A stretch of 64,000 nucleotides of DNA from Euprymna scolopes (lineage: Eukaryota), in assembly GCA_053919585.1 (NCBI GenBank), contig JBSSHM010000097.1. The stretch is one strand, 5' to 3'. This document shows, piece after piece, positions 1 to 36,136 of this stretch (positions within the stretch are counted from its first letter, which is position 1; each line of letters opens with the position of its first letter). The notes under the pieces were generated by a model. The model worked only from the letters and a program-made list of their open reading frames with translations. It did no database searches and was not told where the DNA came from. Both the position numbers and the translations under genes were made by a program.

Positions 1-392
1 AGTTGATCTGGGCGTCCATGGGCAACATCGCAGAATGGACATTTTCTTGTACAAACGCCACCCATAATCATAAAAGTCGCAGTGCCGTGGGAAAAACATT
101 CTGGAAGATTTGGACAGGAGGCTTCTTGACAAACACTTTTTAAATTGTTTTCAGCAAGTAGAGTTTTAATTTTTTGTACTTTGTGAAACCCTTCTGTTGT
201 AGGTGTGCTAACACGAATCCATGAAGGTTTTTTTAACTTTTCTTGATCAGGGATAATGGTGCGTTGGGGCAGCTTGCTATTTTTATATTCGGCTTTAGAT
301 AGTGACTCTCTTCGCTCTTTTAATGAAGCGTAGGGCAGGATGTTTTCAATGGCAACAAAATCTTTTTTACTTGTGCTTTTAGAGGCAATCAT
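1..392 (-). CDS. lipA: Lipoyl synthase, 5' part (runs off the window start)
   Basis: Manual translation gives [38 protein letters not shown], containing both LipA Cys motifs. Not in the ORF track. Confidence 0.95.
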
Positions 393-394
393 TA

Positions 395-661
395 CTAATT
401 ACAAGTTTTTTTATTGATACAATTATGGCAGTAAGGTTTGCCATTTATTTCATTGATGCTATGCATAGGAATATGAGTTTGGCATGTTGTACACTGTACT
501 AATAATTGCTCTTTCGTTTGCCTATCTTCTTGCTTTTTCGTTTGCCTATCTTCTTGCTTTTTTTTTGCTATTACAAGCAATTTTTTCCCTGCTTCATACA
601 GAAGAATAACGCCCAGAAGAATAACGCCAACTAAAAAGATAATACCTTTAAGCCATATCAT
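395..661 (-). CDS. Small membrane-anchored protein with C-terminal Zn-ribbon (PP0621-like)
   Basis: N-terminal TM; [11 protein letters not shown]...YCHNC; abuts the lipA start. Confidence 0.6.
512..559. repeat. 24-bp tandem duplication (KKQEDRQT x2); also a 15-bp duplication at 599-628 (GVILL x2)
   Basis: tttcgtttgcctatcttcttgctt twice; cagaagaataacgcc twice. Confidence 0.9.
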
Positions 662-778
662 CCTAACCTCAACTTAGCAAGCCCTACAATGGTTACACGT
701 TATTTTATGAGCAATCTATCTAGGTAATGACTTTTTATTTGACGGAAGTGCTAATGATAATGGATGCGGATTTGTTCG

Positions 779-1303
779 CTAACTTTTATAGCGATTAATT
801 CCGTCTATAATTTCCTTATATGCACCCTTCACATCATCCCATTTCTCTATTTTGACCCATTTTCCTGGTTCTAGAGACTTGTATTGCTCAAAAAAATGTT
901 CAATTTGTTCCTTAAGTAGAGGAATTTGCTCTATTTGGGTAACGTTTTTGTAGATTGGAGTAAGCTTATCAATTGGTAGGGCAATAACTTTAGCATCTTT
1001 CCCTCCATCATCGGTCATATTGAGTACACCAATTGGTCGGCATTTAATGACGGATCCAATCATAAGTGGGTAGGGAGTAATGACCAAGACATCAACGGGG
1101 TCACCATCTTCGGCTAAAGTATTGTTAATGTATCCGTAGTTTGCAGGATAAAACATGGGAGAAGACATAAAGCGATCTACCCAAATTGAATTGGTTGCTT
1201 TATCGACTTCGTATTTTATTGGTGAGGCATTTTGAGGAATCTCAATGATGACATTGATTTGTTCAGGTGTAGAATCACCTGCAGGTATTGTGGATAAACT
1301 CAT
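779..1303 (-). CDS. ppa: Inorganic pyrophosphatase
   Basis: [23 protein letters not shown] family I PPase motif. Confidence 0.97.
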
Positions 1304-1353
1304 TTTTTTGCTATGATGGTTAGAAATTTATTAGATTATTTGTATAGGTTGTC

Positions 1354-3410: not shown

Positions 3411-3793
3411 TGTGTCTTAATTCTTTTGATGTATCAATACAAATGCACCTGTTCAAGTGCGTCATAAACATGACGTTAGTATTTTTTAACGTATCGTTTG
3501 ATTTAATTCTGTAACCTGTTTTTTTAACTTTATTTAATAGCCTTTAAGAACCAGTAGTCATGGGATATCCCGTGTATATTTCTGACTAGCTACACCCTTC
3601 TAACGTACTATTATAAGTTAAAAGTCTTTAAAAAAAGATGTTTTTATGTATTTTTTGCCATTTATCAAAGAAAATTAAAGTAATTTATCAAAAGATAGAG
3701 GTTTTCTATCTTATTTAATTAAGTTTTTTTATAATATACTCTACAATTTTCCTTTGTTTAGATGGTTTAAATTAAATGATGTATGAATGATGT

Positions 3794-4714
3794 ATGAAGC
3801 ATAATTTCCTTAACTATATTCCTGTTATTTGTATCAGATTGGTAGCTAAAATTCCGGCTAAATTCATGTATGGTTTAGCATGGGTAGGTGCTAAGTTAGT
3901 AGCGCTTTCTAAATTGAATATAAAATATAAGACGAAATTAAATTTAAAAATTGCTTTTCCAGAGCTTCAAGAGGCGGTATTAAATCGTCATTTATTTCAG
4001 GCTATGCATCACTTGTTGTATAGTGCCTATGAAATTTCTAGGGTATGGTGTAGTCCTTTAAAAAAATTAAAACAACAAATTTTAACCGTACATGGAGAAG
4101 AGATATTAAAAATGCATCTTGATAACAATAGACCGGTTATTCTACTTTGTCCGCACTTAGGATGTTGGGAGATGGTTGGATATTGGGTGAACTCTATTGG
4201 CTATAACATATCCATACTTTATAAGCCTATGTCCAATCCTTGTTTAGATGATTTTATGATTCAAGCACGAGCTAAGGGAGGTAATGAGATTGTTCCAGTT
4301 ACCGCTAAAGGAGTAAAAAAAATCTATCAAGATTTAAAAAACAAAAAAATGGTGGGTATTCTTCCGGATCAAGTGCCGCAAGAAGAATCAAGTTATATGA
4401 TGAGTCCTTTTTTTTCAGAGGATGCAGCAACAATGACATTGATACACACGCTATGTAGTAGGACGAATTCATCAGTCGTTTTTATTACGGCGGTGCGTGA
4501 ATCTTATAAAGGATTTCATATCCATATTCAATCAGGAGAAGAGATAATTGATTCAGATGTGCGTCAATCAACAATGAAAATGAATAAAGGCATAGAAAAA
4601 TTAATTGAAATTGCTCCAGATCAATATCAATGGTCATATAGTAGATACCGCTATAATCCATCAGTTGATTATAAACAGGGGATGATAAAGAACTCTTGTG
4701 TTGTTAAAAAATAG
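3794..4714 (+). CDS. lpxL: Lipid A late acyltransferase (LpxL/HtrB family)
   Basis: PHLGCWE, ILPDQ and PDQYQWSYSRY motifs. Confidence 0.85.
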   Translation: MKHNFLNYIPVICIRLVAKIPAKFMYGLAWVGAKLVALSKLNIKYKTKLNLKIAFPELQEAVLNRHLFQAMHHLLYSAYEISRVWCSPLKKLKQQILTVHGEEILKMHLDNNRPVILLCPHLGCWEMVGYWVNSIGYNISILYKPMSNPCLDDFMIQARAKGGNEIVPVTAKGVKKIYQDLKNKKMVGILPDQVPQEESSYMMSPFFSEDAATMTLIHTLCSRTNSSVVFITAVRESYKGFHIHIQSGEEIIDSDVRQSTMKMNKGIEKLIEIAPDQYQWSYSRYRYNPSVDYKQGMIKNSCVVKK

Positions 4715-4719
4715 ATATT

Positions 4720-5199
4720 TTGATGAAAAAAATTATTTTATTATTGGTAGCCATTACAGTAAGTGCATGCTCACAACAGAATAATTACCACAATGTGGTA
4801 TGGAAAGATTTTACTAATCAGGAAGTGAGGTTAAAAGCCTATAAGGGGCGTTGGGTAGTGGTGAATTATTGGGCAACATGGTGTAAACCTTGTATAAAAG
4901 AGATGCCCATTTTACAAACTTATTATGAACAATTCTCTCCGAATGTTGTGATAATAGGTGCCAATATTGAGTATGGTGATGGTTTTGTTTCTGAGCAGGC
5001 AATTGTTCAATTTACACACAAGCTTAATCTAACCTTTCCAATTGTTAAGGCTAATCTAAATTTAGATAAGACTTCTTTGGGAAAAATCAAAGCTTTGCCT
5101 ACGACGAGCATTATTAATCCCAAAGGAGAGATTGTTTATACTCATATAGGGGAAATTAATCGCTCAATATTAGATCAACATATCATATTATCCCAATGA
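4720..5199 (+). CDS. TlpA-family thiol:disulfide oxidoreductase lipoprotein
   Basis: Lipobox VSAC; NYWATWCKPCIKEMP. Confidence 0.9.
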   Translation: MMKKIILLLVAITVSACSQQNNYHNVVWKDFTNQEVRLKAYKGRWVVVNYWATWCKPCIKEMPILQTYYEQFSPNVVIIGANIEYGDGFVSEQAIVQFTHKLNLTFPIVKANLNLDKTSLGKIKALPTTSIINPKGEIVYTHIGEINRSILDQHIILSQ

Positions 5200-15002: not shown

Positions 15003-16454
15003 ATGTCTATTTCTCATAAAAAACAAGATAATAAAGTTTTTGATTTATTGCTTTTTGGAGCTTCAGGAAACTTGGCGTTAACAAAGATTTTACCAAGTTT
15101 ATATTTGCGATTTTTAGGCAATGATATTGCAGAAAAATCACAAATTATTGGCACAGGGACAAAAAACCATTCTGATGAGACTTTTCGCAAAATTGTTGCT
15201 GAAAATCTCATCAAGCATCTCCCAGCTAAGCGAATTAACAAAAAAAAGGTTGTTGAATTTTGTATCTTGGTTACCTACCATAAAATGGATGTTCATCATG
15301 CTGATTTTGCATCCATCAAAAAACTTTTGCGTGTAGAGACCTTACGTATTATTTATCTTTCTATCCCCTCACAGCATTTTTATGTCAGCCTAGAAAAAAT
15401 ACATGAAAATGGCGTAATTAATGAGTATTCACGATTAATTGTTGAAAAACCATTGGGCAATGATTTATCTTCTATGCAAGTGATTAACAATAAAATCACT
15501 CAGTACTTTAATGAAAATCAAGTCTATCGAATTGATCACTACTTAGGTAAAGAATCTGTACAAAATCTGATGATTTTGCGTTTTGCTAATGCTTATTTTG
15601 AACCTTTATGGAATTCTACGCATATTGAGCATGTACAAATCTCTGTAGCAGAGAATATTGGCATTGAGGGTAGAGAAGAGTTTTATGATGCAGTGGGTGC
15701 CTTGCGAGATATGGTACAAAATCATCTTATGCAACTGTTATCACTGATCGCTATGGAGGCACCAGTTAGTTTAGATGCAGATAATATTCGAGATGAAAAG
15801 GTTAAGGTTATCAGTAGTTTACGAGTAGCTCCATTAGGTGATACGGTACGAGCTATTTATGAAGGTAACGATAAAGAAAATAGCTATTTACAAGATGTCA
15901 ATAATCCTAATTCAGAAACCGAGACTTACACAGCATTAGTTGCTTATATTGATAACTGGCGTTGGCATGGTGTGCCGTTTTATTTACGAACGGGTAAGAA
16001 GCTTTCTAAACGCACCTCTGAAATCATCATCACATTTAAAAATAAATCTCATATTCTCTTTCCTAGTCGAGTGAACAAATACACCAATAAATTGATTATT
16101 CGTTTACAGCCTAATGAAGGTGTACAGTTGATTACAACGGTTAAAGATCCTTATAAATCAAAACTATCTCTCAAAGACTTCCCTATTGACATGTTCTTTG
16201 ATGAGATGAAAGAAGATACGGATGTGGATGTATTATCTGCTTATGAGAAATTGCTCATGGAAGTGGTGGCAGGTAATCAAACATTATTTATGCGTTATGA
16301 TGAAATTCAAGCTTCATGGAAATGGATTGATGCTATTATTGAGCAATGGAGAAACTCAGCAGAAGGATTAGCAAGATACGATATTGGCACAGAAGGGCCA
16401 AAAGAGGCGGAACTATTGCTATTAAAAAATGGACATACGTGGGATAAACTATGA
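15003..16454 (+). CDS. zwf: Glucose-6-phosphate 1-dehydrogenase
   Basis: RIDHYLGKE, EKPLG, WHGVPFYLRTGK. Confidence 0.97.
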   Translation: MSISHKKQDNKVFDLLLFGASGNLALTKILPSLYLRFLGNDIAEKSQIIGTGTKNHSDETFRKIVAENLIKHLPAKRINKKKVVEFCILVTYHKMDVHHADFASIKKLLRVETLRIIYLSIPSQHFYVSLEKIHENGVINEYSRLIVEKPLGNDLSSMQVINNKITQYFNENQVYRIDHYLGKESVQNLMILRFANAYFEPLWNSTHIEHVQISVAENIGIEGREEFYDAVGALRDMVQNHLMQLLSLIAMEAPVSLDADNIRDEKVKVISSLRVAPLGDTVRAIYEGNDKENSYLQDVNNPNSETETYTALVAYIDNWRWHGVPFYLRTGKKLSKRTSEIIITFKNKSHILFPSRVNKYTNKLIIRLQPNEGVQLITTVKDPYKSKLSLKDFPIDMFFDEMKEDTDVDVLSAYEKLLMEVVAGNQTLFMRYDEIQASWKWIDAIIEQWRNSAEGLARYDIGTEGPKEAELLLLKNGHTWDKL

Positions 16455-23832: not shown

Positions 23833-24535
23833 GAATTATTGTCAACTTGACAAGTTATTAAGAAAATTATGTGAAACACATAATTGCCATCCCCTCCCCC
23901 TTATATTACCTGTTTCTAAACGTAAGCCAGCTTCTGATATTCGCCAGTTATATGATAGTGGCGTACGTGATTTTGCTGAAAATTACTTGCAAGAGGCACA
24001 GCAAAAAAATGATGAGCTGAGCGATTTTGCGGATATTCGCTGGCATTATATTGGCAAAATTCAATCAAAAAAATGTAAGCATCTGGCTAAGCAAATGTCG
24101 TGGGTTCATACGATTGATGATGTGAAGCAGGCTATGTTGCTAGACCAGTATTGTTTGCATGAAAATAGGGAAAAATTGTTAAATGTTTGTATTCAAGTGA
24201 ATGTGCATCAAGAAGAACAGAAGAATGGTATTGCACCGAGTGATGTCCCTTCTTTTGCCCAACAACTTGTTGCATTCCCCAATCTATGTTTGCGCGGTTT
24301 AATGTTGATTGGCAAGTTTGGTTTGAGTGTTGAGCAACAAGTTGAAGCATTTACCCAAATGAAAAAATTATTTACTATGTGTAAAAAACGCCTGAATGCG
24401 ATTACAGGGAATGAACATGTTGTGGATTCTTTTGATACGTTATCAATGGGAATGAGCGGTGATTGGCAAACAGCGGTGGAAAATGGCTCAACGATTATTC
24501 GTATTGGCACGACTATTTTTGGAGAAAGAAAATAA
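23816..24535 (+). CDS. yggS: PLP homeostasis protein
   Basis: VSK, FAENYLQEA, WHYIGKIQS, LSMGMSGD, RIGTTIFG. Confidence 0.95.
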   Translation: MMSVIENYCQLDKLLRKLCETHNCHPLPLILPVSKRKPASDIRQLYDSGVRDFAENYLQEAQQKNDELSDFADIRWHYIGKIQSKKCKHLAKQMSWVHTIDDVKQAMLLDQYCLHENREKLLNVCIQVNVHQEEQKNGIAPSDVPSFAQQLVAFPNLCLRGLMLIGKFGLSVEQQVEAFTQMKKLFTMCKKRLNAITGNEHVVDSFDTLSMGMSGDWQTAVENGSTIIRIGTTIFGERK

Positions 24536-24561
24536 TGTTTGAGAAGAGAAAAGGATATTAC

Positions 24562-27396
24562 ATGAAAAAATCAAAGTTTCTGTGTATCACATTAATTGCT
24601 TTGTTACTTACAGCTTGCGGAAATGTTGATCCGGTTACTTTTACAGCTGAATCCTCTACTAATACGACTAGTGTAACAGGGGGTGGTACGGGTACTGGTG
24701 GAGGTGGTACAGGTACTGGTAGTGCATCTTTACAAATTACCTCAGGGGCTACGCATGATGTGTTAGAAGGTAGTGCAATTGGAACAAAGGTGTTTATTGC
24801 ATCAGCTAATAATATTTCAGGACGTGTTTATACGTATTCATTAACCCCTGCGGAATATTTTGCAATAGATACAGTAGGGAATGTATTGGTTGCCAAAGTT
24901 TCAGATTATGAGAAAGCTGTAGAGCATAAAGCAACACTATCAATTAGTAATGGTCAGTCAAGTGTGAGCCAACAACTCACATTTAGGGTGGTGAATGAGA
25001 ATGATACGGTTCCAACTATATCCAGTGCTAGCTCTATTTCAGTGAGTCAAACTGCTCAAGTTGGTGATGTGGTGTTAACGATTTTGGCAGATGGTGGTGA
25101 TGGCAGTAAGGATGGAACTTTGACCTATTTCTTAAGCCAAAGCACGGCTTTCTCATTGAATGGTAATAAGATTGTTGTAGCGAATTCAAATTTTTCCCAA
25201 ACTTCAAATCATAATCTAACTCTCGCCGTGAGCGATGGGAAATATCAAACCTCACAGTTAATCACTATCACAGTTTCAAGTAGTAAATCTATGCAACTTA
25301 AACAACCTTTACTAGATAAAAATTTCACCATTCGTCAAGGTGTTAAGTATGTGGGGCAATGGGTGTTGCCTACGGGCTATAGCACAAATTTTTATCCAAA
25401 AATTACTTCTTCTTTGCCTATGGATGCTTCGTTTCAGGTAACTAACCAAAGTATTCAAGAATTTTCTATGCTTTATAAAGGTGGGTTGAGTTCGTTTAGT
25501 TTAGACTATGTTTTAGTGGATGGTTCAGGACAGCAGAGTAAAGATTCTGCTAAGTTTACTTTTACTGTGGAGCAGTATGATCCCTTGCGTAAGCATCAGT
25601 GGTATTTGCAGAATACGGGGCAAAAAGCTTTTGCATCACTGTCTGGCACAGCTGGTGAAGATATTCGGGTTAGCCCTGTGCATGAGCAGAATATTTTAGG
25701 TTCAGGTGTGAAAGTGGCCATTGTTGATGAAGGATTAGAGATTACTCATGAGGATTTAAAAGATAATGTGGTGGTGGGAAAATCCTATGATTTTATTGAT
25801 AATGATACGAATCCTCAGCCAAGAGGAACAACTGGCGATCATGGAACATCTGTGGCAGGTATTACGGCAATGCGAGGCTGGAATAATAAAGGAGGGGTAG
25901 GGGTTGCCCCGGAATCAAGCATTGTCGGTTATAACTATTTAGCTCCTTCTTTAAAGGAAGGAAAGTTTCTCTTTACTTCCATGGGTTATGCTCATTTAGT
26001 TCAAATTAATACTCCTTCAAGAGAGAATCAAGTGTTTAATTTGAGCTTGGGTGAGGCACCGCAGACTATATATTCCGTGTATGGGGCGAGGGATGGATCA
26101 AGTTTATGGGTGGATACGGCACGTTGTGGGACAACGGGTAATTCCTTTCGCTTTGGTTCAACAGAGGGCTTTATTAATAAATCCAACTGTGTCCCTCTCA
26201 ATGCAGGTAAGGGAGCGGTGTATGTGAAATCAGCTGGGAATTATTACAGTGATAGTGCTTGTAAAAATCAGCCTAGTGAGTTAAGTTGTGATGTGGTAAA
26301 TGGGGCAGAAATTAGCGAAGGAAATCCTCATATGCTAGTGATTTCCTCTCTGAATGCAAGAGGAAAGCGAGCCTCCTATGCTTCGGTTGGTCCAGCTGTG
26401 TGGGTAAGTGCTCCAGGTGGTGAAGCAGGATATTCTAACAGTGTTTATGATACGATTAATAGCCGTTTTGGTTTGAATTATGTTTGGTCATCAGATGTAG
26501 TGAAAAGACCCTCTATGGTTACTACGGATGAGTCTGGTTGTAATAAAGGTTATTCAACGGAACGTCATAAACTTACTCATAATGGTACTAGTTATTTCCT
26601 CCCTTATACGCCTTTTCATGGCACATTAGTTTTTGCAAGTAATGGTAGTACTTCTATTGTTCCCAATGCAGAAAATAGTAACTGTAATTATGTTTCAGAT
26701 TTTATCGGTTCCTCCGCGGCAGCACCGGTTGTTTCTGGTGTGGCAGCGTTGTTATTATCTGTCAATAAAGATCTCACGTGGCGAGATGTACGCTATATTC
26801 TCGCAAAAACTGCTAGACAAACGGATAAGCAGGTGAGTGCTTACAGTAAACAAGTTTCAGATGGTTCACAATTATTGCGTGCGACGTGGCAAACCAATCA
26901 AGCAAATTTCCCCTTTCATCATTGGTACGGATTTGGTGTAGTGAATGCAGAGGCTGCGGTAACGATGGCAAAAAGCTATACTCATTTTCTTACCAATGAT
27001 AAATTGATACAAGGTGAATGGATTGATGGAACGTTTCCAAGTAATAATGCCATTGCGGATAATAGCGTTAAAGGAGTGGAGGGAACGGTGAATGTTCCAG
27101 CACAAAATATGCAGTGGATTGAAGGGGTGCAAATTCGCTTATCTGTTACCCATCCATATATTTCAGACATATCTGCTAAATTGATTTCCCCTAGTGGTAC
27201 AGAAAGTATTGTTGTGCGTGCCTTTAATTCATTTGGGGATAACGATAATTATAAGGATACGTTATTCTACACTAATAAATTTTATCGAGAAACGGCGATT
27301 GATGGGCAGTGGAAATTAGTGATTACTGATAGTCGTTCAGGTAATGTCGGTACGGCAACTGATTGGAAAATACGATTTTATGGTGAGAAGAAATAA
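24562..27396 (+). CDS. Lipoprotein S8 kexin/ASP-like serine protease with cadherin-like repeats and P-domain
   Basis: AAGGA before ATG 24562; lipobox LTAC; DYE and VVNEND cadherin-type motifs; VDEG, DHGT, SAGN, GSSAAAP; LTWRDV; C-terminal P-domain (LISPSGT...GQWKL). Confidence 0.9.
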   Translation: MKKSKFLCITLIALLLTACGNVDPVTFTAESSTNTTSVTGGGTGTGGGGTGTGSASLQITSGATHDVLEGSAIGTKVFIASANNISGRVYTYSLTPAEYFAIDTVGNVLVAKVSDYEKAVEHKATLSISNGQSSVSQQLTFRVVNENDTVPTISSASSISVSQTAQVGDVVLTILADGGDGSKDGTLTYFLSQSTAFSLNGNKIVVANSNFSQTSNHNLTLAVSDGKYQTSQLITITVSSSKSMQLKQPLLDKNFTIRQGVKYVGQWVLPTGYSTNFYPKITSSLPMDASFQVTNQSIQEFSMLYKGGLSSFSLDYVLVDGSGQQSKDSAKFTFTVEQYDPLRKHQWYLQNTGQKAFASLSGTAGEDIRVSPVHEQNILGSGVKVAIVDEGLEITHEDLKDNVVVGKSYDFIDNDTNPQPRGTTGDHGTSVAGITAMRGWNNKGGVGVAPESSIVGYNYLAPSLKEGKFLFTSMGYAHLVQINTPSRENQVFNLSLGEAPQTIYSVYGARDGSSLWVDTARCGTTGNSFRFGSTEGFINKSNCVPLNAGKGAVYVKSAGNYYSDSACKNQPSELSCDVVNGAEISEGNPHMLVISSLNARGKRASYASVGPAVWVSAPGGEAGYSNSVYDTINSRFGLNYVWSSDVVKRPSMVTTDESGCNKGYSTERHKLTHNGTSYFLPYTPFHGTLVFASNGSTSIVPNAENSNCNYVSDFIGSSAAAPVVSGVAALLLSVNKDLTWRDVRYILAKTARQTDKQVSAYSKQVSDGSQLLRATWQTNQANFPFHHWYGFGVVNAEAAVTMAKSYTHFLTNDKLIQGEWIDGTFPSNNAIADNSVKGVEGTVNVPAQNMQWIEGVQIRLSVTHPYISDISAKLISPSGTESIVVRAFNSFGDNDNYKDTLFYTNKFYRETAIDGQWKLVITDSRSGNVGTATDWKIRFYGEKK

Positions 27397-27431
27397 TGCG
27401 TAACTTTACCTATATAAACAAAGGAATAAAC

Positions 27432-28001
27432 ATGAACATATTACACTGTATCAGTTGGAAATCTTTCGCTTTTTTTATTGTTGTCTTTCAGTTTTCTTCA
27501 TTGGCATTAGCTAATGAATGGGCAACTGGAGAAACGTATCAGTCGGGAAGTGAAAGATATCAATTTGCTCCAGCATTAAAAGCTATGCCTAAAAATCAGG
27601 TGCTTAGATTAAAAAATATTGTTAGGGAGAAGGGGAATGTGGCAATTGTTCATGATCCTAAGATGCCAAAAAGTAACGTAGGGGTGTCGACTGAGAAATC
27701 TGTTTCAGCCCAACAGTCAGATTGTGGGAATTGCCAAGTTTTGTGGAATGAGAGAAGAAAAAAATATGCCGTATTACTTCCTACAGTGGCAATTCGTCCT
27801 AAAAATAATCAGGAGCAGGCAGTTATTCAGAAACTTGATGCGATGCCTTTAATTACCTATCGTATCCTCCCTATTTATATTGAGGTAATGGTGTCGGATA
27901 TGCAGAATTGGTCAACGGTCATGAAAGAACTCAATCAATTACAATCTTTAACAGATTTTATTCAACCAGAAATTATAGAAAATACGGTACTTCCTGAGTA
28001 A
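27432..28001 (+). CDS. Secreted protein, candidate external chaperone of the upstream protease
   Basis: AAGGA RBS, signal peptide ending ALA, directly after the protease; alternative start at 27396. Confidence 0.55.
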   Translation: MNILHCISWKSFAFFIVVFQFSSLALANEWATGETYQSGSERYQFAPALKAMPKNQVLRLKNIVREKGNVAIVHDPKMPKSNVGVSTEKSVSAQQSDCGNCQVLWNERRKKYAVLLPTVAIRPKNNQEQAVIQKLDAMPLITYRILPIYIEVMVSDMQNWSTVMKELNQLQSLTDFIQPEIIENTVLPE

Positions 28002-28018: not shown

Positions 28019-29599
28019 TTAAGGAAAGACCATGCGGAAACCCAAATCGGGATTATGATAGTTTGGTGAGACGGCAGCAGATTGCGTGACTTGAGTGGCT
28101 TCTTTCGGGAGCGTGAAACTGCCACCTTTAATGATTACATGAAAGCGATTGCCGTAGTGTGAGACGGAAGATGTCCATTCTGCAACATTACCACTTAATC
28201 CCAATACCCCATGTAAAGAATCATCATCAGATAAGTCTGCATTGCGAGCATGGTTGTCACTACCTGGGTGATTTCTATCAATGCTGCGACCAATCTCATA
28301 TTCATTTCCCCATGGGTGCAGAGTTGAGCGAGCTCCAGCAATTTTTTTCCATTCTTGATCCGTTGGTAGGCGTCCGCCTGCCCAATTGCTAAAAGCCCAT
28401 GCACTCCACCAAGTGATGTCGGTGATAGGCTTTTTAGGGGTTTTCTGTTGTTGTTGCCAATTTTTTGGGCGATGTGTAATTTCTGATGGATGTTTGGGAT
28501 GATCAAAGAAGTGCAGTTTGGTGAGTGGGTCTTGTAAGAAAGCTTGATATTGCTTAACACTGATTTCAGTTCTGCTAATACGAATCTCTAGGGGTATTTG
28601 TTTGATGGGTAATGATGAAAGGCTTGGGTACTGTTCAGGGGTTAAGTATTGTAGCATTTTAACAATAATTGAGGAGGGAGGAGTGCCAATAGGATAGAAT
28701 CCTGATGGGATAGATTGTAGTTTGGTAGTTGATTTCCAAGGGGTTTGGCGTGCGATATTGGGTAAATTAGCGGGTCTTGGATAGACACAACGAAATCCAG
28801 AGTATTGTGAGCGATAATCAAAAGGCGCTGGTCTTTGGATAAGATTTAAGGCGTGTATATTAAGTGGGCGATTGTAAGCATTTCCTCCCATGAGTACGGC
28901 TTTGCCATTTTTTTTTGTTGCCCATTCTAATAAGTTATTGCCTAAGTCTTGTACGTGTGTTTCAGTAGTAGGTAATTTTGCTTTGCCACAAGCTTGCACA
29001 TTCAGTGTTGGATCTCTAAATGGCATGGCTCTGCGAATAATTTTTTTATCTGTATGATTGCCCCATGGGTAAATATTTCCTTTTTTTCCATTGGCTATCG
29101 CTTCAAATTCATAGTCATAGGGGAGTCTGCCACCTGCTGCTTGGCAATAGCTATGTGCTTCAAAATAACTTACCCCACTGACTGGCATGTTTAAGCGTCC
29201 CAGGAGTTTGTGTCCGGCTGTTTTACTTTGATATATCCAATTATCAGGCTGGGAAGGATGAGCGATATTGGGTCGATTTTCTTGGGTAGCGAGCCACTGG
29301 CGAAACTTTCCAAAATCTTTTTGCGTGACTTCGCATTCATCTATCCATAGAGCAGGCAGTTTGGTAAGTGAGGATGGGCGAGTAAAAAACTGGACTAATT
29401 TAGGCTTATTTTGTAAATGTTGAAGACTGCTTTGTAAAACTTTATCTAGTGGACTGAGGTCGGTTTGTTCTTGGATGTTAATGTCTACCGTATCAATATG
29501 AATATTGGCAATAAAAAACCATCGCCATGTCATAAAAGCAATGATACTTAGGCAGAATAAGATTAGTACAAGGGTGGTTGTATTACGTAGCTTTAACAA
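28019..29599 (-). CDS. Membrane-anchored protein with two FGE/SUMF1-like domains
   Basis: Two sets of PV..VS/IT W/Y..A, GGRLP, PWGN, GN..EW and GFR motifs; N-terminal TM. Confidence 0.88.
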   Translation of the reverse strand: MLKLRNTTTLVLILFCLSIIAFMTWRWFFIANIHIDTVDINIQEQTDLSPLDKVLQSSLQHLQNKPKLVQFFTRPSSLTKLPALWIDECEVTQKDFGKFRQWLATQENRPNIAHPSQPDNWIYQSKTAGHKLLGRLNMPVSGVSYFEAHSYCQAAGGRLPYDYEFEAIANGKKGNIYPWGNHTDKKIIRRAMPFRDPTLNVQACGKAKLPTTETHVQDLGNNLLEWATKKNGKAVLMGGNAYNRPLNIHALNLIQRPAPFDYRSQYSGFRCVYPRPANLPNIARQTPWKSTTKLQSIPSGFYPIGTPPSSIIVKMLQYLTPEQYPSLSSLPIKQIPLEIRISRTEISVKQYQAFLQDPLTKLHFFDHPKHPSEITHRPKNWQQQQKTPKKPITDITWWSAWAFSNWAGGRLPTDQEWKKIAGARSTLHPWGNEYEIGRSIDRNHPGSDNHARNADLSDDDSLHGVLGLSGNVAEWTSSVSHYGNRFHVIIKGGSFTLPKEATQVTQSAAVSPNYHNPDLGFRMVFP

Positions 29600-30281
29600 A
29601 GGCTTTGCTCAGATTTAGGAGGTAGGGTGGTATGAAGTCCATCAATGTGTTCTTGTAAATCTGGTTTGATAGTTGAACGCATGGGATCTAAAATAAATTC
29701 TATACCCTCTCTACGAGCTAATTTCGCAACAGGAACAAAGTCACTATCTCCGGAAATCAGTATAATTTTATTGACTAATTTTTTGTATGTCATGGAGGCA
29801 ATATCAAGACCAATTTTCATGTCCACACTTTTTTGTTGAGCATAATATACGACATCAGATTCTGTGAGAGAAGATGTGTGTAATTTTCCAGCAATAAATT
29901 TTTTTCTTTATGAGGGTCTTTGATTTTCCAACGAGCATGTCTTTCATCAAGAGATCCTAACCTTAATGCTACATTTCTTGTTTTTCTTAATTGATTGTGA
30001 AAATTCAGGCGAAATATAGCGGTTTTTGATTGGCTAAAATCAATGAGATTATTGCTGATAGGATGATGTATTTTTTTTTGTATAGGTGGGCAATCGTAGA
30101 AAAATATTCGGTAGAGTCTTTCATCCTCCCCTTTATTTTGTTGATGTTGTTTGCTTTGAATATGCTTTAAGCAATGATCCGTTAAGTTTCTAGCAACTAG
30201 CTCTGGGTTGGTTTGCTGAAAAAATCTACGATGTTTCTTTAAATAGAAATCCCCATCAACTAGAATAGCTACATTTCGCAT
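29593..30281 (-). CDS. NYN-domain (PIN-like, LabA/DUF88) ribonuclease, frameshift at the T7 run 29899-29905
   Basis: AILVDGDF, RIFFYDCPP, QKSVDMKIGLDIAS, SGDSDFVP; adding one A joins the two ORFs. Confidence 0.9.
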
Positions 30282-30301
30282 CGTACATTGTTATTTTGGA
30301 T

Positions 30302-30374
30302 AAAAAAAATCCAAAGGATCGGCGAAACACCTATTTATTAATATGTGATTAGCTTACTGCTTTGGATTGTGTAT
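30302..30374 (-). ncRNA. Candidate structured leader or small RNA upstream of the NYN gene
   Basis: 9-bp closing stem AATCCAAAG/CTTTGGATT (30368-30360 with 30316-30308), inner CAC-A-TATT/AATA-G-GTG helix, followed by a U-tract. Confidence 0.55.
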
Positions 30375-30380
30375 AAGATT

Positions 30381-30410
30381 ATTTTACAATAAATGATTAT
30401 TGTTTGTAAA
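30381..30410 (-). promoter_or_regulatory. Sigma70-like promoter for the leader RNA and NYN gene
   Basis: TTTACA-N18-TAAAAT. Confidence 0.5.
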
Positions 30411-30413
30411 TAA

Positions 30414-32285
30414 TCAAGAGGTGTTTTTTTGTGATGTGAAATTTTCTATGCTATGCTTAGGTGATGATTTCTTGCGAAGCATCAGAGAGAGACTTAGCCC
30501 TGCAATAATCAGTAAAAAGAGTAGAATGCCAATGCTGGTATAGAGGATGGTGGCAATGTTTTTGGCTTGATGATTCTCTTGTAATTTAGGTTCGGGGATG
30601 AGTGTTTTGTTCACTTGTGTGCCAAGGGTTTGGGCATCAAGTAGGAGTTTATTATTTGAAAATGCGGCATTGACAAAGCCGATGGAGGCATCTTCTAACC
30701 AAGGGTCAACGATGATGATTGGACGCCATTGCATAGCAGGATAGTTGGTTTCATTAGGGTGAACAATAAGTAGATGACCGGGAGGAAAGTCAAGCCGTTG
30801 TCCTTTGTATAGTCCCGGGAAGGAGCGTAGGACTAGGCTTATTTGAGCATTGTTTGTGCTAATGTTTTCGCTCCATAGGGAATCGCTTTGGTTAATGAGT
30901 AAGGTACTGGTAACATTTACGTGATTGGCACTGAGCTGGAGTTTGTTAGGGGCCTCAGTAAAAATTTTTGTGATTGGTGCAGGTTGGGTGGGTTTATTAA
31001 TAAAATATCTTTTGAGTTCGTTATCTAAACTGGTGATGAGTTTATTGTTGGGATGGTGGTTAATCATCTCTGGATTTCTGGCATAGCGATTTAGGATTTC
31101 TTTTATGCCCTTTATAAAGGTGGTTTTCTGTGCTCGAGCAAGCTGTAGCTGATCAAGAAAGAAGGCGAGTAATACTCGATTATAGTCTTGTTCATCAAGG
31201 GTAATTTGATGAGGAGGTTGTTGAGAGCCTTGTTTGGGTTGTCCATGATCTTTGGAATTGGGGACATGCATTTTTAGAGAGCGTCTGCCCTGTTGTCCGG
31301 ATTGCCCTTGATTTTGTTGTCCGTTGGGTTGATTGGATTGTCCAGAATTGGATTGTTGTGAGTTGCTGTTTTTATCTCCTAGTAAGTCAATGAGGGATTC
31401 AAACATGGAATCAAGGCTTCTTTGGTTATTACCTTGTTTTCCTTGTGAGTTTTGTTGATTAGCTGGTGAGGAATTATTTGTTTGTTCGCCTTGTTTCCCG
31501 TCTTCACTGTTTCCGGAATTCTCACTAGGCGGTAGGAGGCTATCATGTTGGAGTTCTTGTAAGGTTTGTAAATCAGCAAGTTGCGTATTATCCAATGATG
31601 AAGAGCCATTTTGTTGCGATTGTTCGTTACCATCTTGAGCATTTGCAGAATCATTATCAGAAAATTTATCTCCTTCACCAAGTTGTTCTTGTTCTTTGCC
31701 AGCGGCACCATGCTTACCATCAGCTAAAGCTTGTTCTGGAGAAATTAGTGGTTTAACATCTTCGCCAAGGTAGTGCCAGTGTCGAGGAGAGATGTCGTGT
31801 TCTTTTAATATACCAATGGCAAGATAATAGAGACTAACATCGTAAACATCAATACGTATGTTTAATTTTTCTTGAGGGTTGAAGGTTTTAATAAGTTGAT
31901 CAAAAGGGTTATTGGGTTTGAGCAGTTCTTTACGATAAAAACGCAGCCCCGTGTTGTATTCACGGATGTAGTTTTGTCTGAGTTCAACAATGGGGTAGAG
32001 AGAGGGGTCGCAGTCATGTGGGATGGCACAACTATTGTAGTCATGCAGGAGTGCTGGTGGACTGGAGGGGAGATCATTGTATACGACAGTTGTGGCGATT
32101 TGACGGGCAAGTATTGTAGTAATATCGGCATTTTTCTCTAGTTCAAGATCAGCTTTTTCTTGTTGGACAGATAAGGTAACAACAATTAAAATGAGAATGA
32201 CGGCAACGCTGTTGGCAAGAATATCTGCTAAGGCAACTCCACCTTGTCCCCATAGCGATATTTTTTTATTTCTCAGCTGACTCAT
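30414..32285 (-). CDS. Uncharacterised protein with MotB/ExbD-like N-terminal TM (ALADIL), Q/N/S/G-rich linker and C-terminal TM
   Basis: Asp in the N-terminal TM; low-complexity centre; hydrophobic tail followed by RKK. Confidence 0.7.
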   Translation of the reverse strand: MSQLRNKKISLWGQGGVALADILANSVAVILILIVVTLSVQQEKADLELEKNADITTILARQIATTVVYNDLPSSPPALLHDYNSCAIPHDCDPSLYPIVELRQNYIREYNTGLRFYRKELLKPNNPFDQLIKTFNPQEKLNIRIDVYDVSLYYLAIGILKEHDISPRHWHYLGEDVKPLISPEQALADGKHGAAGKEQEQLGEGDKFSDNDSANAQDGNEQSQQNGSSSLDNTQLADLQTLQELQHDSLLPPSENSGNSEDGKQGEQTNNSSPANQQNSQGKQGNNQRSLDSMFESLIDLLGDKNSNSQQSNSGQSNQPNGQQNQGQSGQQGRRSLKMHVPNSKDHGQPKQGSQQPPHQITLDEQDYNRVLLAFFLDQLQLARAQKTTFIKGIKEILNRYARNPEMINHHPNNKLITSLDNELKRYFINKPTQPAPITKIFTEAPNKLQLSANHVNVTSTLLINQSDSLWSENISTNNAQISLVLRSFPGLYKGQRLDFPPGHLLIVHPNETNYPAMQWRPIIIVDPWLEDASIGFVNAAFSNNKLLLDAQTLGTQVNKTLIPEPKLQENHQAKNIATILYTSIGILLFLLIIAGLSLSLMLRKKSSPKHSIENFTSQKNTS

Positions 32286-32294
32286 GGGTAATAA

Positions 32295-32828
32295 TTATCG
32301 GCTTTTGCTTAATGCACGTTTGATTCGTACCGGTAGATCTTCGAGTTTAACGGTGTTTAACAAATCGCTGTTTGCAATAATCCAACCAATGCTGATGCGT
32401 TTATTAGGATTGGAGGTTAACATGCAGTTGCGTGCAATTGCCATGGTTTTTACGCCACCTTCTAAAATGGCAAAAATAATTTGTTGTTTATGGTTGTTGT
32501 AGATTTTATTAATATAGTTAAGAAAATCTCCACCTGAGGTACATATATCTGCTCGTTTAATACTTTGGTTGGTTTCTAAAATGCGTAATTTATCTGGATA
32601 AGAGATAACGACAAGACCTTCCCCTCCATTTGTCCAGCTTACTTTGAACTCAGCATTTTCAGTTGAGCGTTCAAGCATGGCTTGGATATCTTCAGAGATA
32701 ACTAGGTTTATGAGTGCATAGAGAATAATTAATAGTGCTAATGTGCCACCAAATATTTCCACCATGGGGGCATCAATAACATTATCAATTTGATTTTTTC
32801 TGCGGTTTCTTCGTGAAAACCTATACAT
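32295..32828 (-). CDS. Bitopic ExbD/TolR-like protein
   Basis: Basic N-terminus, then APMVEIFGGTLALLIIL TM with an acidic residue; overlaps the stop of the MotA/TolQ gene. Confidence 0.6.
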   Translation of the reverse strand: MYRFSRRNRRKNQIDNVIDAPMVEIFGGTLALLIILYALINLVISEDIQAMLERSTENAEFKVSWTNGGEGLVVISYPDKLRILETNQSIKRADICTSGGDFLNYINKIYNNHKQQIIFAILEGGVKTMAIARNCMLTSNPNKRISIGWIIANSDLLNTVKLEDLPVRIKRALSKSR

Positions 32829-33885
32829 TTGAGTGAGTTATTTCGTGAGTGGTTGGTGCATTGATGGAAACAGGATTTTGCTCAAATTGTGAGAGTAATT
32901 TTTCTTCCCATCGGGCAATAAGTGTTTGTAAGAGGGTAAGGGTGACAGAAAGAGTCAGGGCAATGAGTGTTGTATCAAAAGCAATGCCAAGTGGAGAAAG
33001 TGCTTCAGAGAGTAGCTGACTATAATTTGATTCTGAGGTGGCAAGTAAGTCAGAGAGTCCTTCTGTAGCAAGAGAAATTCCAAGTACGGTGCCAATAAAA
33101 CCGAGAATGGGAATTGCCCAGTTGATGTATTTTGGTATGGCATAAAAGCTATCGAGTTGTTGCCAGCATAGTTCAATGAGTTTATTTTTGTTGTTTGATG
33201 TTTTGCTGGATTGATAAAGTTTCGCTAAGGCTTGAGCACGATTTTTTACCATGTAGAGATAAATAGTGATAAGCTTGCCAAGAATTAAAATAAGTCCCCA
33301 AAAAAACAATAGTAAGGTTAGGGGTGGAATAATGCCTCGGGTAAGAAATTTTGTAGCAATAATTTTTAGTACACCAGTATCTATGTTGTACATAATGATG
33401 AGCAGGGCATTCACAATAATGATTCCGATAATGAGACTGATAATCAGTGATGGACCTTGAAAAATACGCTGGACTTTTTCACTCACTGATAACTCATCTT
33501 CTGTTTTATTGAAGCGTATGAGATGCATTTGTAGTGTACTGGCAAGCAGCAGGCTAAAAAGTAGGGTGAGTAGATGGTTAACCAATGTAATGGATTCACC
33601 TTGTAGGATATCTTGCCATAAGTTTGCTGAAGTTCCACTAATAACAATTAGCAGGGTACTTAAGGTACTCCAATAGCTTATATTAATTGCACCTGGGGTT
33701 CTGAGTGCAAGCACACTGGGGATGCTGAGAAGAATGATAATTGTCCAGCCAAATAACAGCATGGCTCCCATATCTGCCATTTTGTATTGTTGGATGAAGA
33801 AGTAAAAGCAGATTAGGGGAATAATAGCATTGAGTAACAGTACGGTTTTTGAAAGTCCGTTGGGTTTGTTTGATGTAGATGACAT
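32821..33885 (-). CDS. MotA/TolQ/ExbB proton-channel family protein with extra N-terminal TMs
   Basis: AIPILGFIGTVLGI and LGIAFDTTLIAL helices. Confidence 0.9.
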   Translation of the reverse strand: MSSTSNKPNGLSKTVLLLNAIIPLICFYFFIQQYKMADMGAMLLFGWTIIILLSIPSVLALRTPGAINISYWSTLSTLLIVISGTSANLWQDILQGESITLVNHLLTLLFSLLLASTLQMHLIRFNKTEDELSVSEKVQRIFQGPSLIISLIIGIIIVNALLIIMYNIDTGVLKIIATKFLTRGIIPPLTLLLFFWGLILILGKLITIYLYMVKNRAQALAKLYQSSKTSNNKNKLIELCWQQLDSFYAIPKYINWAIPILGFIGTVLGISLATEGLSDLLATSESNYSQLLSEALSPLGIAFDTTLIALTLSVTLTLLQTLIARWEEKLLSQFEQNPVSINAPTTHEITHSNV

Positions 33886-33952: not shown

Positions 33953-34492
33953 TTATAGATTGACAGGAATACTAAATGACCCATCTCTTCTTATTTTTGG
34001 AATAGTGTTTAATAAATTTTGTAGTTCATGGTCATCTTTTTTAACGGTTACTTTACCAATTATTCGTGAAGGTTTTTTAGAGAAATCACCAATAGCTTTA
34101 ATGGATAAAGCAGCTTGGTTATCTTGTAATTGAAAGATTATGCCATTTAAGTCAACACCAACATAGGAAAAATAATTGCCTAATTTTTTTCCAGCGACTT
34201 GCACTTGATTTAGCTCAATTTTATAAACAATTTTGAGAGACAGAAGGCGCTTGTATTCAAGCGACCAATTGATGTGAGGGACATAGGCAATAATAGGGAT
34301 ATTAGGTTTAGTGGCAATGCTACTATGACCTTTCCAAATCGTTCCTGCTGGGAGTTTGACTTGGATGGGAAGATTGATTATTTCTGGTTTAATAAATTGT
34401 TTATATACCCAGCTTGCAGGGAGATTGACAATCATAAAAATGATAAAAAATAGAATAAATAGGAGAGAGCTAAGAATGATTTTTTTAATCAT
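33953..34492 (-). CDS. gspN: Short type II secretion GspN-like protein
   Basis: TM plus NLPASWV and GTIWKG; follows gspL and gspM. Confidence 0.7.
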   Translation of the reverse strand: MIKKIILSSLLFILFFIIFMIVNLPASWVYKQFIKPEIINLPIQVKLPAGTIWKGHSSIATKPNIPIIAYVPHINWSLEYKRLLSLKIVYKIELNQVQVAGKKLGNYFSYVGVDLNGIIFQLQDNQAALSIKAIGDFSKKPSRIIGKVTVKKDDHELQNLLNTIPKIRRDGSFSIPVNL

Positions 34493-34537
34493 TTGTATAG
34501 GGTGTCTTATTAGTGGTTATTTGTCTCAATCCATCCA

Positions 34538-35065
34538 TTATTTAAATGGGGAGTTGGCTCTTTGCTTGTCATGTGTAGTTGCTAAGGTAAGTTTAGCATC
34601 TACCTTTCCTGATGTTTTGGTAGCATTCATATTAACACTTCTAAAGACGACTTGATAATCAAAATTTAATTGACTCACCCAATCAATTAATTTTTTGTAA
34701 GGAACGTTTTCAAACGTGACAATGGTTTCTTTACGTTGGTTTTGAAAAATTCTTTTTTTCCATGGGTTGAGAGAGAGTTCTTCTAGGGTTTGTTCAACAA
34801 CACTTGGCAGATTGTTGGTACTCCAGTCAAATGTTTTAGTGGTGTCAGAAAGCAAGACACTTTGCTGGTTAAACCACTGGGTAAAACGTTGCTCATTAGT
34901 TAATTGGCTTTTGAGTTTTTTATTAGAGAGAGATATAGGTTCCCATATAGCAAGATAAAAAATAAAAATAATAATCATTGGTAGGCCGATGATTATCATG
35001 ATCTGTTCACGTGGTTCACGTGTTTCATAAAATTCAATTAAGGGTTGTATGAGATCTCGAATCAT
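34538..35065 (-). CDS. gspM: Type II secretion protein M
   Basis: PREQ, TM, IWEPI, coiled coil, ENVPYKKLIDWV. Confidence 0.85.
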   Translation of the reverse strand: MIRDLIQPLIEFYETREPREQIMIIIGLPMIIIFIFYLAIWEPISLSNKKLKSQLTNEQRFTQWFNQQSVLLSDTTKTFDWSTNNLPSVVEQTLEELSLNPWKKRIFQNQRKETIVTFENVPYKKLIDWVSQLNFDYQVVFRSVNMNATKTSGKVDAKLTLATTHDKQRANSPFK

Positions 35066-35089
35066 AGTTAACTAAGTTTCATACTATTT

Positions 35090-36136
35090 CTATGTAATTT
35101 TCTTTATGCTAATAGTTGATTTTGCCTTACCATCACTATCACCAAGCGATTGGACATTAATATCCAATGTTTTATTTTCTTTAAGTTTATTGATAAAGTC
35201 TTGAATGCCGGCGACTGAATTTGATTTTACATAAATTCGTAATGCGTAATTATTGTAGTTGACTTGTGTGAGGTTGATTTTTTTGCTGTTGTCTAAGGCG
35301 GTGATAACGGCTTCTGTTAAACCAATAAAATTCACACTGTAAAATTGCTTTTGTTGATTGATTTTGCGAAATTTTTGTTCAGCTTGTGTACGTAGATTGA
35401 CAATACGTTTTTCCTCAGGAAATAAACCTTTAAATTTTTGAATATTTGCTTGTCTAGTTTTATTTATAGAGGACTCAATTTGTTGGTTTTCTAGGTAATA
35501 ATAAGCACTGAGGCTTAACCAGAGCACGCCCCCCCATGCGGCAACTTTTAGCCATGGTTGTAATAGGGTTTTGTAGGGAGTGCTTTTATTGTATTCATTT
35601 TGTAATAGATTAATTATTGAGGAACTAATGTTGATGTCGCTTTCTAATAATTCGCCATAATTTTCAGCTATAAATGGTGCTGGAATGTCTTCCTCTGGGA
35701 GTAGATTGGCGACGTCTTCTATAATATTGGGGTGTATGGCTACGGGAAGTTTATCTGGAGAATTGATCAGGCATTGATCAGGTTCAATAAGAAAGTTACT
35801 TTCTTCAGGAAGGACAAGGACATCTGGGATAAATTTTTTCGGGTTGATTCCGTGCTCAATGCATAAATCAAGCCATTGTCGTATTTTTTCATGTGAGCAT
35901 ACGACCACAAACCATTGCTCGCCAGATCTCTGCACAGCATAGTGTAAATCAGAGATGTCTTGTGCGAGTTCTTCTTCTAAGCTAAAGGCAATAATGCGTT
36001 GACATTGTGCAATGCTTTTGGCAGGTAAAGAAAGCTTGAAGAAAGATAGGTGTATAGACGGAATGAGGATAGTATGACCAATAAAGTCATCACTCATTAC
36101 AAGTTCGTGGTTAGGGGTAATTCTTGCAACATCCAT
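35090..36136 (-). CDS. gspL: Type II secretion protein L
   Basis: FSLEEELAQDISDLHYA, IPDVLVLP, INLLQ, FP...RIVNLRTQ. Confidence 0.88.
   Translation of the reverse strand: MDVARITPNHELVMSDDFIGHTILIPSIHLSFFKLSLPAKSIAQCQRIIAFSLEEELAQDISDLHYAVQRSGEQWFVVVCSHEKIRQWLDLCIEHGINPKKFIPDVLVLPEESNFLIEPDQCLINSPDKLPVAIHPNIIEDVANLLPEEDIPAPFIAENYGELLESDINISSSIINLLQNEYNKSTPYKTLLQPWLKVAAWGGVLWLSLSAYYYLENQQIESSINKTRQANIQKFKGLFPEEKRIVNLRTQAEQKFRKINQQKQFYSVNFIGLTEAVITALDNSKKINLTQVNYNNYALRIYVKSNSVAGIQDFINKLKENKTLDINVQSLGDSDGKAKSTISIKKIT

Follow-up and report, generated by a model that had tools for sequence, protein, structure and literature searches.

A conserved four-gene set for a putative Ton/Tol-like membrane motor with a tandem FGE-fold partner in a mollusc-associated bacterium

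A bacterium living with the mollusc Euprymna scolopes carries a tightly packed set of four genes that appears to encode an ion-driven inner-membrane motor of the Ton/Tol kind, joined to a membrane-anchored, lectin-like protein that is predicted to be periplasmic. The set was examined in a 64,000-nucleotide stretch of contig JBSSHM010000097.1 (GenBank assembly GCA_053919585.1; hereafter the window), where it lies on the minus strand and comprises a MotA/TolQ/ExbB-type protein (A), two membrane proteins with TolR/ExbD-like predicted periplasmic domains (B1 and B2), and a protein with two FGE-fold domains that lack the catalytic cysteine pair (FGE). The same set recurs in hundreds of genomes (at least 587 related stretches among species-representative genomes), the nearest being mostly those of sponge symbionts, and no PADLOC, NCBIfam, virus-contig or literature match to it was found. 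An earlier note, made from the sequence alone, had described these genes as an uncharacterised ion-motor operon, and that description of the locus is borne out in full; its interpretation, a motor with a heterodimeric pair of acidic B subunits that transmits force through a long linker to a periplasmic FGE-fold scaffold, is supported only in part.

The four genes and their conservation

The A subunit (33885..32821, 354 aa) matches Pfam PF01618 (MotA_ExbB) at 24.3 bits against a cut-off of 22.9, a narrow margin, although 27 of 29 homologues also match the family and the nearest ESM Atlas clusters are all MotA/TolQ/ExbB; a profile of A finds no PDB sequence. A hydropathy scan identifies four clear hydrophobic segments, plus one weaker, ahead of the three canonical membrane helices, and only about 50 aa of cytoplasmic loop. 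The C-terminal half is invariant in an alignment of homologues, and the conserved core (residues 175–340, 32866..33363) holds the invariant motifs PILGFIGTVLGISLA (T266) and PLGIAFDTTLIAL (D304, T305, T306), so that the two C-terminal membrane helices carry the conserved Thr-bearing motifs that line the ion path in this family. In an hhalign comparison IPILGFIGTVLGI lines up with SPYIGLFGTVWGI of Escherichia coli TolQ, placing T266 (in GFIGTVLGI) opposite TolQ T145 of the G-T-V motif, although the score is not significant and the correspondence is at the level of the motif only.

B1 (32828..32295, 177 aa) overlaps A by 8 nt and has a single N-terminal membrane helix (P21-M-V-E24-I-F26-G27-G), of which P21, F26, G27 and L32 are among the best conserved residues of the protein. 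None of 38 members matches any Pfam family, including ExbD (PF02472). In the structural model (pLDDT 79) the best matches are TolR 5by4 (Z 7.5, rmsd 2.6, 81 aa) and ExbD 8p9r (Z 6.7), values that remain below 8 and rest on a predicted structure. An hhalign comparison places P-M-V-E opposite P20-L-L-D23 of E. coli TolR, but again without significance. The codon of Glu24 lies at 32757..32759. The earlier note had named loss of the acidic membrane residues across homologues as grounds for rejecting its reading, and for B1 this is what is seen in half of the family: by a count of the motif rows the position is Glu in 36 loci, Ala in 40 and Ser in 1, with no other acidic residue in the helix, and the gene tree requires at least two changes. 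A pair of acidic partners is therefore not a rule of the family, and the apparent covariation between B1 and B2 rests on only about two evolutionary events.

B2 (32285..30414, 623 aa) begins 9 nt after B1 and carries A18-L-A-D21-I-L in its N-terminal membrane helix. Asp21 (codon 32223..32225), in the family motif (V/I)AL(A/V)D-ILAN, is invariant in 37/37 aligned homologues and in 77/77 loci, and is the candidate proton-binding residue. The first periplasmic domain (residues 89–172, 31770..32021) has a TolR/ExbD-like predicted fold: an exhaustive VIA search of 48,161 chains puts TolR 5by4 first (Z 6.9, 97 aa) and Haemophilus influenzae TolR 2jwk second (Z 6.0, rmsd 2.1), and the first ESM Atlas shape match is an ExbD/TolR cluster that is 100% PF02472, though here too Z is below 8 and the query is a model. 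None of 37 B2 members matches a Pfam family (neither PF02472 nor the MotB plug or OmpA domains), and hhalign against E. coli TolR is not significant. A low-complexity linker follows (residues 182–332, 31290..31742; Q 19%, S 15%, N 13%, G 11%), predicted to be disordered (pLDDT below 50 over residues 189–332), variable in length and sequence across the family and unalignable. The conserved C-terminal periplasmic domain (residues 365–550, 30636..31193) is modelled as a helical bundle plus a beta-sandwich, mostly with pLDDT above 90, and has no recognised fold; a Foldseek search of the PDB gave nothing significant. A C-terminal membrane helix (residues 585–603, hydropathy 2.76) followed by RKK, together at 30468..30533, would return the chain to the cytoplasm; a hydrophobic stretch with a basic tail is kept in all full-length homologues, without sequence conservation.

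The FGE protein (29599..28019, 526 aa, TTG start) has an N-terminal hydrophobic anchor and two FGE-sulfatase domains (about 28769–29410 and 28028–28582), matching PF03781 at 158 bits in two stretches; PDB profile hits to FGE and SUMF2 reach 1e-17, and the closest PDB sequence is the non-catalytic SUMF2/pFGE. The CxxxxC copper-binding pair expected between GG(N/S) and GFR is absent from both domains across 34 homologues, whereas C152 and C271, the structural pair of domain 1, are invariant, which fits a periplasmic location. Between B2 and FGE in this genome sits a NYN (LabA-like) nuclease gene (29593..30281), split by a frameshift at an A7 run (29899–29905) into two overlapping reading frames (30281..29817 and 29826..29593), of which only the second, of 77 aa, matches PF01936. 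This gene is an insertion and not part of the conserved system, being absent from all 80 loci examined and from the closest relatives, where B2 and FGE are 27 nt apart.

The arrangement is far beyond chance. Among the 80 best related genome loci, A-B1-B2-FGE occurs in the same order, on the same strand and abutting in 72, or in 72 of the 76 with enough downstream sequence, across at least five phyla. Of the eight exceptions four are contig ends and two carry a transposase directly after A. The overlapping or abutting reading frames suggest translational coupling, and no other flanking gene is conserved. No TonB, TolA, OmpA-like or flagellar gene was found among 20 neighbouring genes scanned against Pfam, as the earlier note had observed; these neighbours are gspL/M/N-like genes, an ABC exporter and housekeeping genes such as glnA, prs and argS, and a subtilase and yggS were named by NCBIfam.

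A predicted motor that acts in the periplasm

The best explanation (held with a probability of roughly 60 per cent) is that these genes form a conserved operon for an inner-membrane, ion-driven motor of the ExbB-ExbD/TolQ-TolR type whose work is done on the periplasmic side. In this view A would be the channel-forming subunit, assembled as a pentamer by analogy, with a minimal cytoplasmic domain, and B2 would be the TolR/ExbD-type subunit whose Asp21 takes up and releases the proton. B1 would be a second, short TolR/ExbD-like subunit with a highly conserved membrane helix that either pairs with B2 inside the A ring or docks on it as an accessory, and in this genome it still has a membrane Glu. 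A heterodimeric B axle is thus only one option. The FGE protein, which is non-catalytic by the cysteine criterion and has a C-type-lectin-like fold, is the most likely periplasmic partner or load, and may bind an envelope or host-derived ligand. What the analysis itself establishes is the gene set, its conservation, the fold predictions and the conservation of individual residues; the stoichiometry, the contacts between the four proteins, the ion used and any transmission of force through the linker to the FGE protein are inferences from sequence and predicted structure. No cytoplasmic effector is present in the set. It must also be weighed that B2 is anchored in the inner membrane at both ends, unlike TonB, TolA or MotB and a point that the earlier note did not consider, and that no outer-membrane or peptidoglycan-binding part was identified. 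The carriers seen here are uncultured and, where a host is named, come from sponges, an octocoral and here a mollusc, which points to envelope work linked to life inside an animal rather than to motility or nuclease-based defence.

Several known motors are instructive for comparison. Like the Ton system motor (ExbB-ExbD with TonB, including variants with two ExbD genes), the set has an ExbB-type channel subunit with a small cytoplasmic domain, bitopic partner genes directly downstream, a membrane acidic residue after a proline (P-x-x-D/E), ExbD/TolR-like predicted periplasmic domains, and a long flexible periplasmic segment that recalls the TonB linker. However, neither TonB nor a TonB-dependent receptor was found among the 20 neighbouring genes or as a conserved flank in the 80 loci, B1 and B2 do not match Pfam ExbD, A has four to five extra N-terminal helices, B2 carries the linker itself and returns to the inner membrane, and a tandem FGE-fold protein is the fixed fourth gene. 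The Tol-Pal motor (TolQ-TolR-TolA) supplies the best structural match for both B1 and B2 and the aligned GTV motif, and works in the periplasm as the present set is inferred to do, but TolA, TolB, Pal and CpoB are not in the cluster (nor are TolA, TolB and Pal in the conserved flanks) and sequence similarity to TolQ and TolR is not significant. The Myxococcus gliding motor AglR-AglQ-AglS likewise pairs one MotA/TolQ-type subunit with two different TolR-type subunits; both AglQ and AglS keep the acidic residue, whereas B1 loses it in half of this family, there are no Glt partners here, and the carriers are symbionts with small genomes.

The type IX secretion and gliding motor GldL-GldM, with the FGE-fold lipoprotein GldK/PorK, offers an analogy, drawn also by the earlier note, in that an ion-driven inner-membrane motor with a long periplasmic arm is encoded next to a non-catalytic FGE-fold protein. 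This is not homology: the FGE protein scores 26 bits on the NCBIfam GldK model against a cut-off of 350 and is a tandem, helix-anchored protein rather than a lipoprotein, A belongs to PF01618 and not to GldL, A, B1 and B2 have no NCBIfam hit, and there is no GldN or secretin-like part. The Zorya motor ZorA-ZorB is a MotA/MotB-related pair used outside motility and is spread horizontally, but the present set has no PADLOC match, no ZorC/ZorD-type effector, no long ZorA tail and no peptidoglycan-binding domain of the ZorB type.

Alternative readings

The alternative that survives best, although it is unlikely, keeps the motor but makes its output enzymatic, with the tandem FGE-fold protein acting as a periplasmic enzyme of another chemistry (as PvdO and the FGE-like domains of EgtB and OvsA show for this fold) that A, B1 and B2 would position, gate or energise to modify an envelope or host molecule. 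The FGE profile matches EgtB, OvsA, CalU17 and SenA-type enzymes about as well as FGE itself, and many columns of both domains are invariant, which fits an active or binding site. Against this, the closest PDB sequence is the non-catalytic SUMF2/pFGE, no DinB or other metal-binding partner domain is present, and no substrate-related gene is conserved nearby.

Less likely still is an anti-phage or anti-invader system of the Zorya kind, in which a MotA-like channel with B subunits would sense envelope perturbation and trigger a response. The patchy distribution, the horizontal transfer across phyla implied by the gene tree, the transposases beside two disrupted copies and the NYN nuclease gene inserted here might suggest as much, and sponge symbionts are rich in defence genes. 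Yet A, B1, B2 and FGE have no PADLOC hit, no nuclease, ATPase or other cytoplasmic effector is conserved with the set, A has a short C-terminus and cytoplasmic loop unlike the long tail of ZorA, the family was not found on virus contigs, the operon sits here among housekeeping genes, and NYN is absent from every relative.

An accessory role in type II secretion is doubtful: the set lies directly downstream of gspL, gspM and a gspN-like gene on the same strand, with only 67 nt between the gspN-like stop and the A start and the same synteny in the closest relatives (69–74% identity), but none of the 80 more distant loci has gspL/M/N next to it, and the link is therefore confined to one lineage. 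That the genes are merely neighbours, for which three loci with A alone could be cited (two of them with a transposase right after A), is already contradicted by the neighbourhood survey.

Significance for symbiont biology

Ion-driven motors of the MotA/ExbB type are known to power flagella, nutrient import, envelope division, gliding and secretion, and one phage defence, and each new partner set has revealed a new use of the same engine. What makes this set worth attention is its fixed and unusual composition, in which two unlike TolR-like subunits, one with its own long arm and a second membrane anchor, are joined by a tandem FGE-fold protein without the catalytic cysteines, and in which two of the four proteins have no family in Pfam, NCBIfam or PADLOC. 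The natural split between copies of B1 with and without the membrane Glu is a ready-made test of how many proton-binding residues such a motor needs.

A bolder possibility, speculative but not excluded, is that the set is a symbiosis-linked envelope machine, a horizontally shared, proton-driven motor specific to bacteria that live inside marine invertebrates, which would use lectin-like FGE domains to grip or remodel a host-matrix or envelope glycan, for example to hold position in host tissue or to escape uptake by host cells. It would then be a new functional class of 5:2-type motor and a marker of the symbiotic lifestyle. Short of that reading, all carriers seen here are uncultured and most are animal symbionts from several phyla, and the set may therefore be one of the few concrete molecular machines tied to that lifestyle.

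The gene set and its conservation

Between 28019 and 33885 the minus strand carries a run of tightly packed genes, beginning with A (33885..32821, 354 aa), which is followed by B1 (32828..32295, 177 aa), overlapping A by 8 nt, and by B2 (32285..30414, 623 aa), which starts 9 nt after B1. Two overlapping ORFs (30281..29817 and 29826..29593) together look like one NYN (LabA-like) gene whose frame changes at an A7 run at 29899-29905, and this break could be a true frameshift, slippage, or a homopolymer assembly error. The FGE gene (29599..28019, 526 aa) initiates at a TTG that overlaps the NYN stop. The description given in the earlier note is accurate, with the two corrections that the acidic residue of B1 is E24 and that the NYN gene is split.

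Upstream on the same strand lie an ABC exporter and, directly before the operon (33953-36136, minus strand), gspL, gspM and a weak gspN-like gene, set apart from any other T2SS gene. A subtilase and yggS (both named by NCBIfam) and housekeeping genes such as glnA, prs, argS and ilvD lie further out. The subtilase-like serine protease (977 aa, with weak mycosin and dentilisin-type matches) is followed by a 201-aa protein with a signal-like N-terminus and no family, and the pair (24463-28001, plus strand) converges on the 3' end of the FGE gene. No TonB, TolA, OmpA-like or flagellar gene was found among the neighboring genes scanned against Pfam.

Protein A has more than 1000 relatives in the protein collection searched, the closest at 74% identity. 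A scan of one genome per species found at least 587 related stretches, of which the 80 best were retrieved and compared with the proteins of the window by tblastn and blastp, giving A in 80 loci, B1 in 77, B2 in 76 and FGE in 72. The order was always A-B1-B2-FGE, on one strand, with genes abutting or overlapping. Of the eight loci without the full set, four are contig ends, one (locus L011) has gatA and gatB after B2, one has unrelated genes after A, and two (loci L022, 8844-9869, and L073, 8947-9810) have a transposase (YhgA-like; PD-(D/E)XK type) directly after A, with B1, B2 and FGE missing, and look like operons disrupted by mobile elements. Thus, 72 of the 76 loci with enough downstream sequence hold the full set.

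No other flanking gene is conserved, and NYN, gspL/M/N, the subtilase and the 201-aa neighbor were never found in the 80 loci. In the closest relatives (69-74% identity) gspL, gspM and the gspN-like gene are again upstream (locus L081, 7270-9529; locus L083, 7812-9983), but B2 and FGE are 27 nt apart with no NYN gene between them. NYN is therefore a recent insertion into the operon, and the T2SS adjacency is a trait of this lineage only.

Predicted identity of the subunits

Protein A hits Pfam MotA_ExbB just above threshold (24.3 against 22.9 bits), 27 of 29 homologues match PF01618, and the nearest ESM Atlas clusters are all MotA/TolQ/ExbB. Its C-terminal half is almost invariant, with motifs that include PILGFIGTVLGISLA and PLGIAFDTTLIALSLS. 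A hydropathy scan shows four clear segments and one weaker one ahead of the canonical three, with only about 50 aa between the first and second core helices, a condensed cytoplasmic domain of the ExbB/TolQ kind and not the flagellar kind. A profile alignment (hhalign) places IPILGFIGTVLGI on E. coli TolQ SPYIGLFGTVWGI, such that T266 sits opposite TolQ T145, but the score is not significant and the alignment served only to line up motifs. Searches of all PDB sequences with profiles of A and of B2 gave no meaningful hit, and PADLOC and NCBIfam scans of A, B1 and B2 gave nothing. A is thus a distant member of the superfamily.

Neither B1 nor B2 has a Pfam, NCBIfam or PADLOC family. The B1 model (pLDDT 79) shows an N-terminal helix and an alpha/beta domain, for which the best structural matches are E. 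coli TolR (Z 7.5, rmsd 2.6, 81 residues) and ExbD (Z 6.3-6.7). The B2 model (pLDDT 70) shows, in order, a long N-terminal helix, a domain at residues 89-172, a disordered Q/S/N/G-rich stretch at residues 182-332, a confident C-terminal domain at residues 365-550, and a C-terminal membrane helix. An exhaustive comparison of the first B2 domain with 48,161 chains puts TolR first and second (Z 6.9 and 6.0), and a shape search of the ESM Atlas puts an ExbD/TolR cluster first. These Z values are middling and could reflect a common arrangement of elements, and sequence methods do not confirm membership, hhalign of B1 and B2 against E. coli TolR being not significant. There is nevertheless reason to give them weight, given that the same family tops three different searches for two proteins, that each protein follows a MotA/ExbB gene, and that each carries the expected membrane motif. 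BLASTP of B1 against B2 showed no similarity and hhalign of their profiles gave only a weak 41-column match, and the two are therefore not recent duplicates. The C-terminal domain of B2 has no recognized fold so far, a Foldseek search of the PDB having found nothing clear.

The FGE protein carries two FGE-sulfatase stretches totaling 158 bits. Both domains are conserved across 34 homologues, and neither has a cysteine pair between the GG(N/S) and GFR motifs. Domain 1 keeps an invariant pair, C152 and C271, that corresponds to a structural disulfide of human FGE. The best PDB relative by sequence is SUMF2/pFGE, the non-catalytic paralogue, while PorK also matches, but weakly.

The acidic membrane residues differ in their conservation. 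B2 Asp21 is invariant in 77 of 77 loci, inside the near-invariant motif AL(A/V)DILAN. B1 Glu24, by contrast, is Glu in 36 loci, Ala in 40 and Ser in 1, with no other acidic residue in the helix, and on a tree built from A plus FGE the loss of Glu maps to one large clade of 39 loci and one pair of loci. Conservation of these residues was one criterion that the earlier note had set for itself, and by it the claim of two acidic partners holds for the clade of this genome and fails as a family rule. The interpretation in that note, a heterodimeric-B motor, is therefore only partly supported: B2 would be the proton-binding subunit, whereas B1 may be a co-axle or an accessory. The B1 helix is nevertheless among the best conserved parts of the protein (P21, F26, G27, L32), which speaks for a specific contact in the membrane rather than a plain anchor, while the FGE anchor and the C-terminal helix of B2 are conserved only in hydrophobicity. 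B1 Glu goes with Ala before the B2 Asp, and B1 Ala goes with Val, almost without exception, but on the same tree there are only 2 and 3 changes and 2 independent pairs, too few for a statistical test, and this apparent covariation cannot count as evidence of contact.

Distribution among uncultured bacteria

All 80 loci come from uncultured bacteria. Seventeen bear taxon names tied to sponges (Poriferihabitaceae, Spongiihabitans, Porisulfidus, symbionts of Iophon and Hymedesmia, and Thioalkalivibrio sp. HK1), 15 carry bin labels recognizable from sponge metagenome studies, 10 belong to Oxydemutatoraceae or Azotimanducaceae, names that appear mainly in sponge papers, and 26 are chromosome-level MAGs without a telling name. 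These loci are only the 80 best of at least 587 and are biased towards relatives of the query, and the counts are accordingly not a measure of enrichment. B1 relatives with names include Spongiihabitans and the bacterium AqS1, the symbiont of the sponge Amphimedon. A search for public sequencing runs holding the operon listed none.

The closest named relative of the copy in the window is GCA_929200535.1 (locus L082), of the GTDB genus CAKMZV01, the genus to which the bacterium of the window is closest, and GCA_929200605.1 (locus L081) is a further relative. A 2026 paper reports that genus from the octocoral Leptogorgia and says that one GTDB release (R226) assigned the nudibranch symbiont Ca. 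Felimaribacter (about 1.7 Mb genome) to it, although the authors themselves place Felimaribacter in a separate new order (PMC13393909). With a mollusc host, the present contig may come from such a symbiont. In the octocoral-associated relative L081, the neighborhood of the operon holds a giant HYR-repeat protein and a Fic-domain protein (1-4991 and 15183-16394), which are gene types typical of host-interacting bacteria.

Members from Nitrospirota (on a complete chromosome), Thermodesulfobacteriota, Alphaproteobacteria and Myxococcota (loci L057, L077, L074 and L025) are present, as is a Spirochaetota copy (locus L038), and those with the full set nest among gammaproteobacterial copies in the tree. 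This implies horizontal transfer, and points to transfer between phyla that share a host habitat.

Alternative readings and inferred mechanism

Several other readings of this gene set were considered. An enzymatic role for the FGE protein cannot be excluded. A defense function of the Zorya kind is disfavored, because there is no PADLOC match, no effector, no long tail on A, no relative in a scan of virus contigs, and a housekeeping neighborhood at the present locus. A role as a T2SS accessory would be confined to one lineage. Chance adjacency is excluded by the survey of loci.

Literature searches found no description of this set, and a 2025 survey of MotAB and its non-flagellar relatives contains no mention of FGE, sulfatase or sponge. 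Ion motors of the Ton/Tol type are already known, and what appears to be new is the present set of partners around such a motor. B2 is anchored at both ends and no outer-membrane or wall-binding module is evident, two features that are unlike any described system and for which there is as yet no explanation.

The manner in which the set most likely works may be informed by ExbB-ExbD and TolQ-TolR. The analysis establishes the gene set, its conservation, the fold predictions and the conservation of residues, whereas the assembly, the proton cycling, the periplasmic work and the binding of a target are inferred by analogy with those two systems. In this view, A would form the ring and B2 would sit within it with Asp21 cycling protons, and the TolR-like domains and the long arm of B2 would convert this into movement or conformational work in the periplasm. 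The tandem FGE-fold protein, anchored beside them, would be the partner that binds the target. Three features, namely the minimal cytoplasmic part of A, the absence of any conserved cytoplasmic gene, and the inferred periplasmic location of everything else, point to work in the periplasm rather than to torque on a cytoplasmic rotor or a nuclease response.
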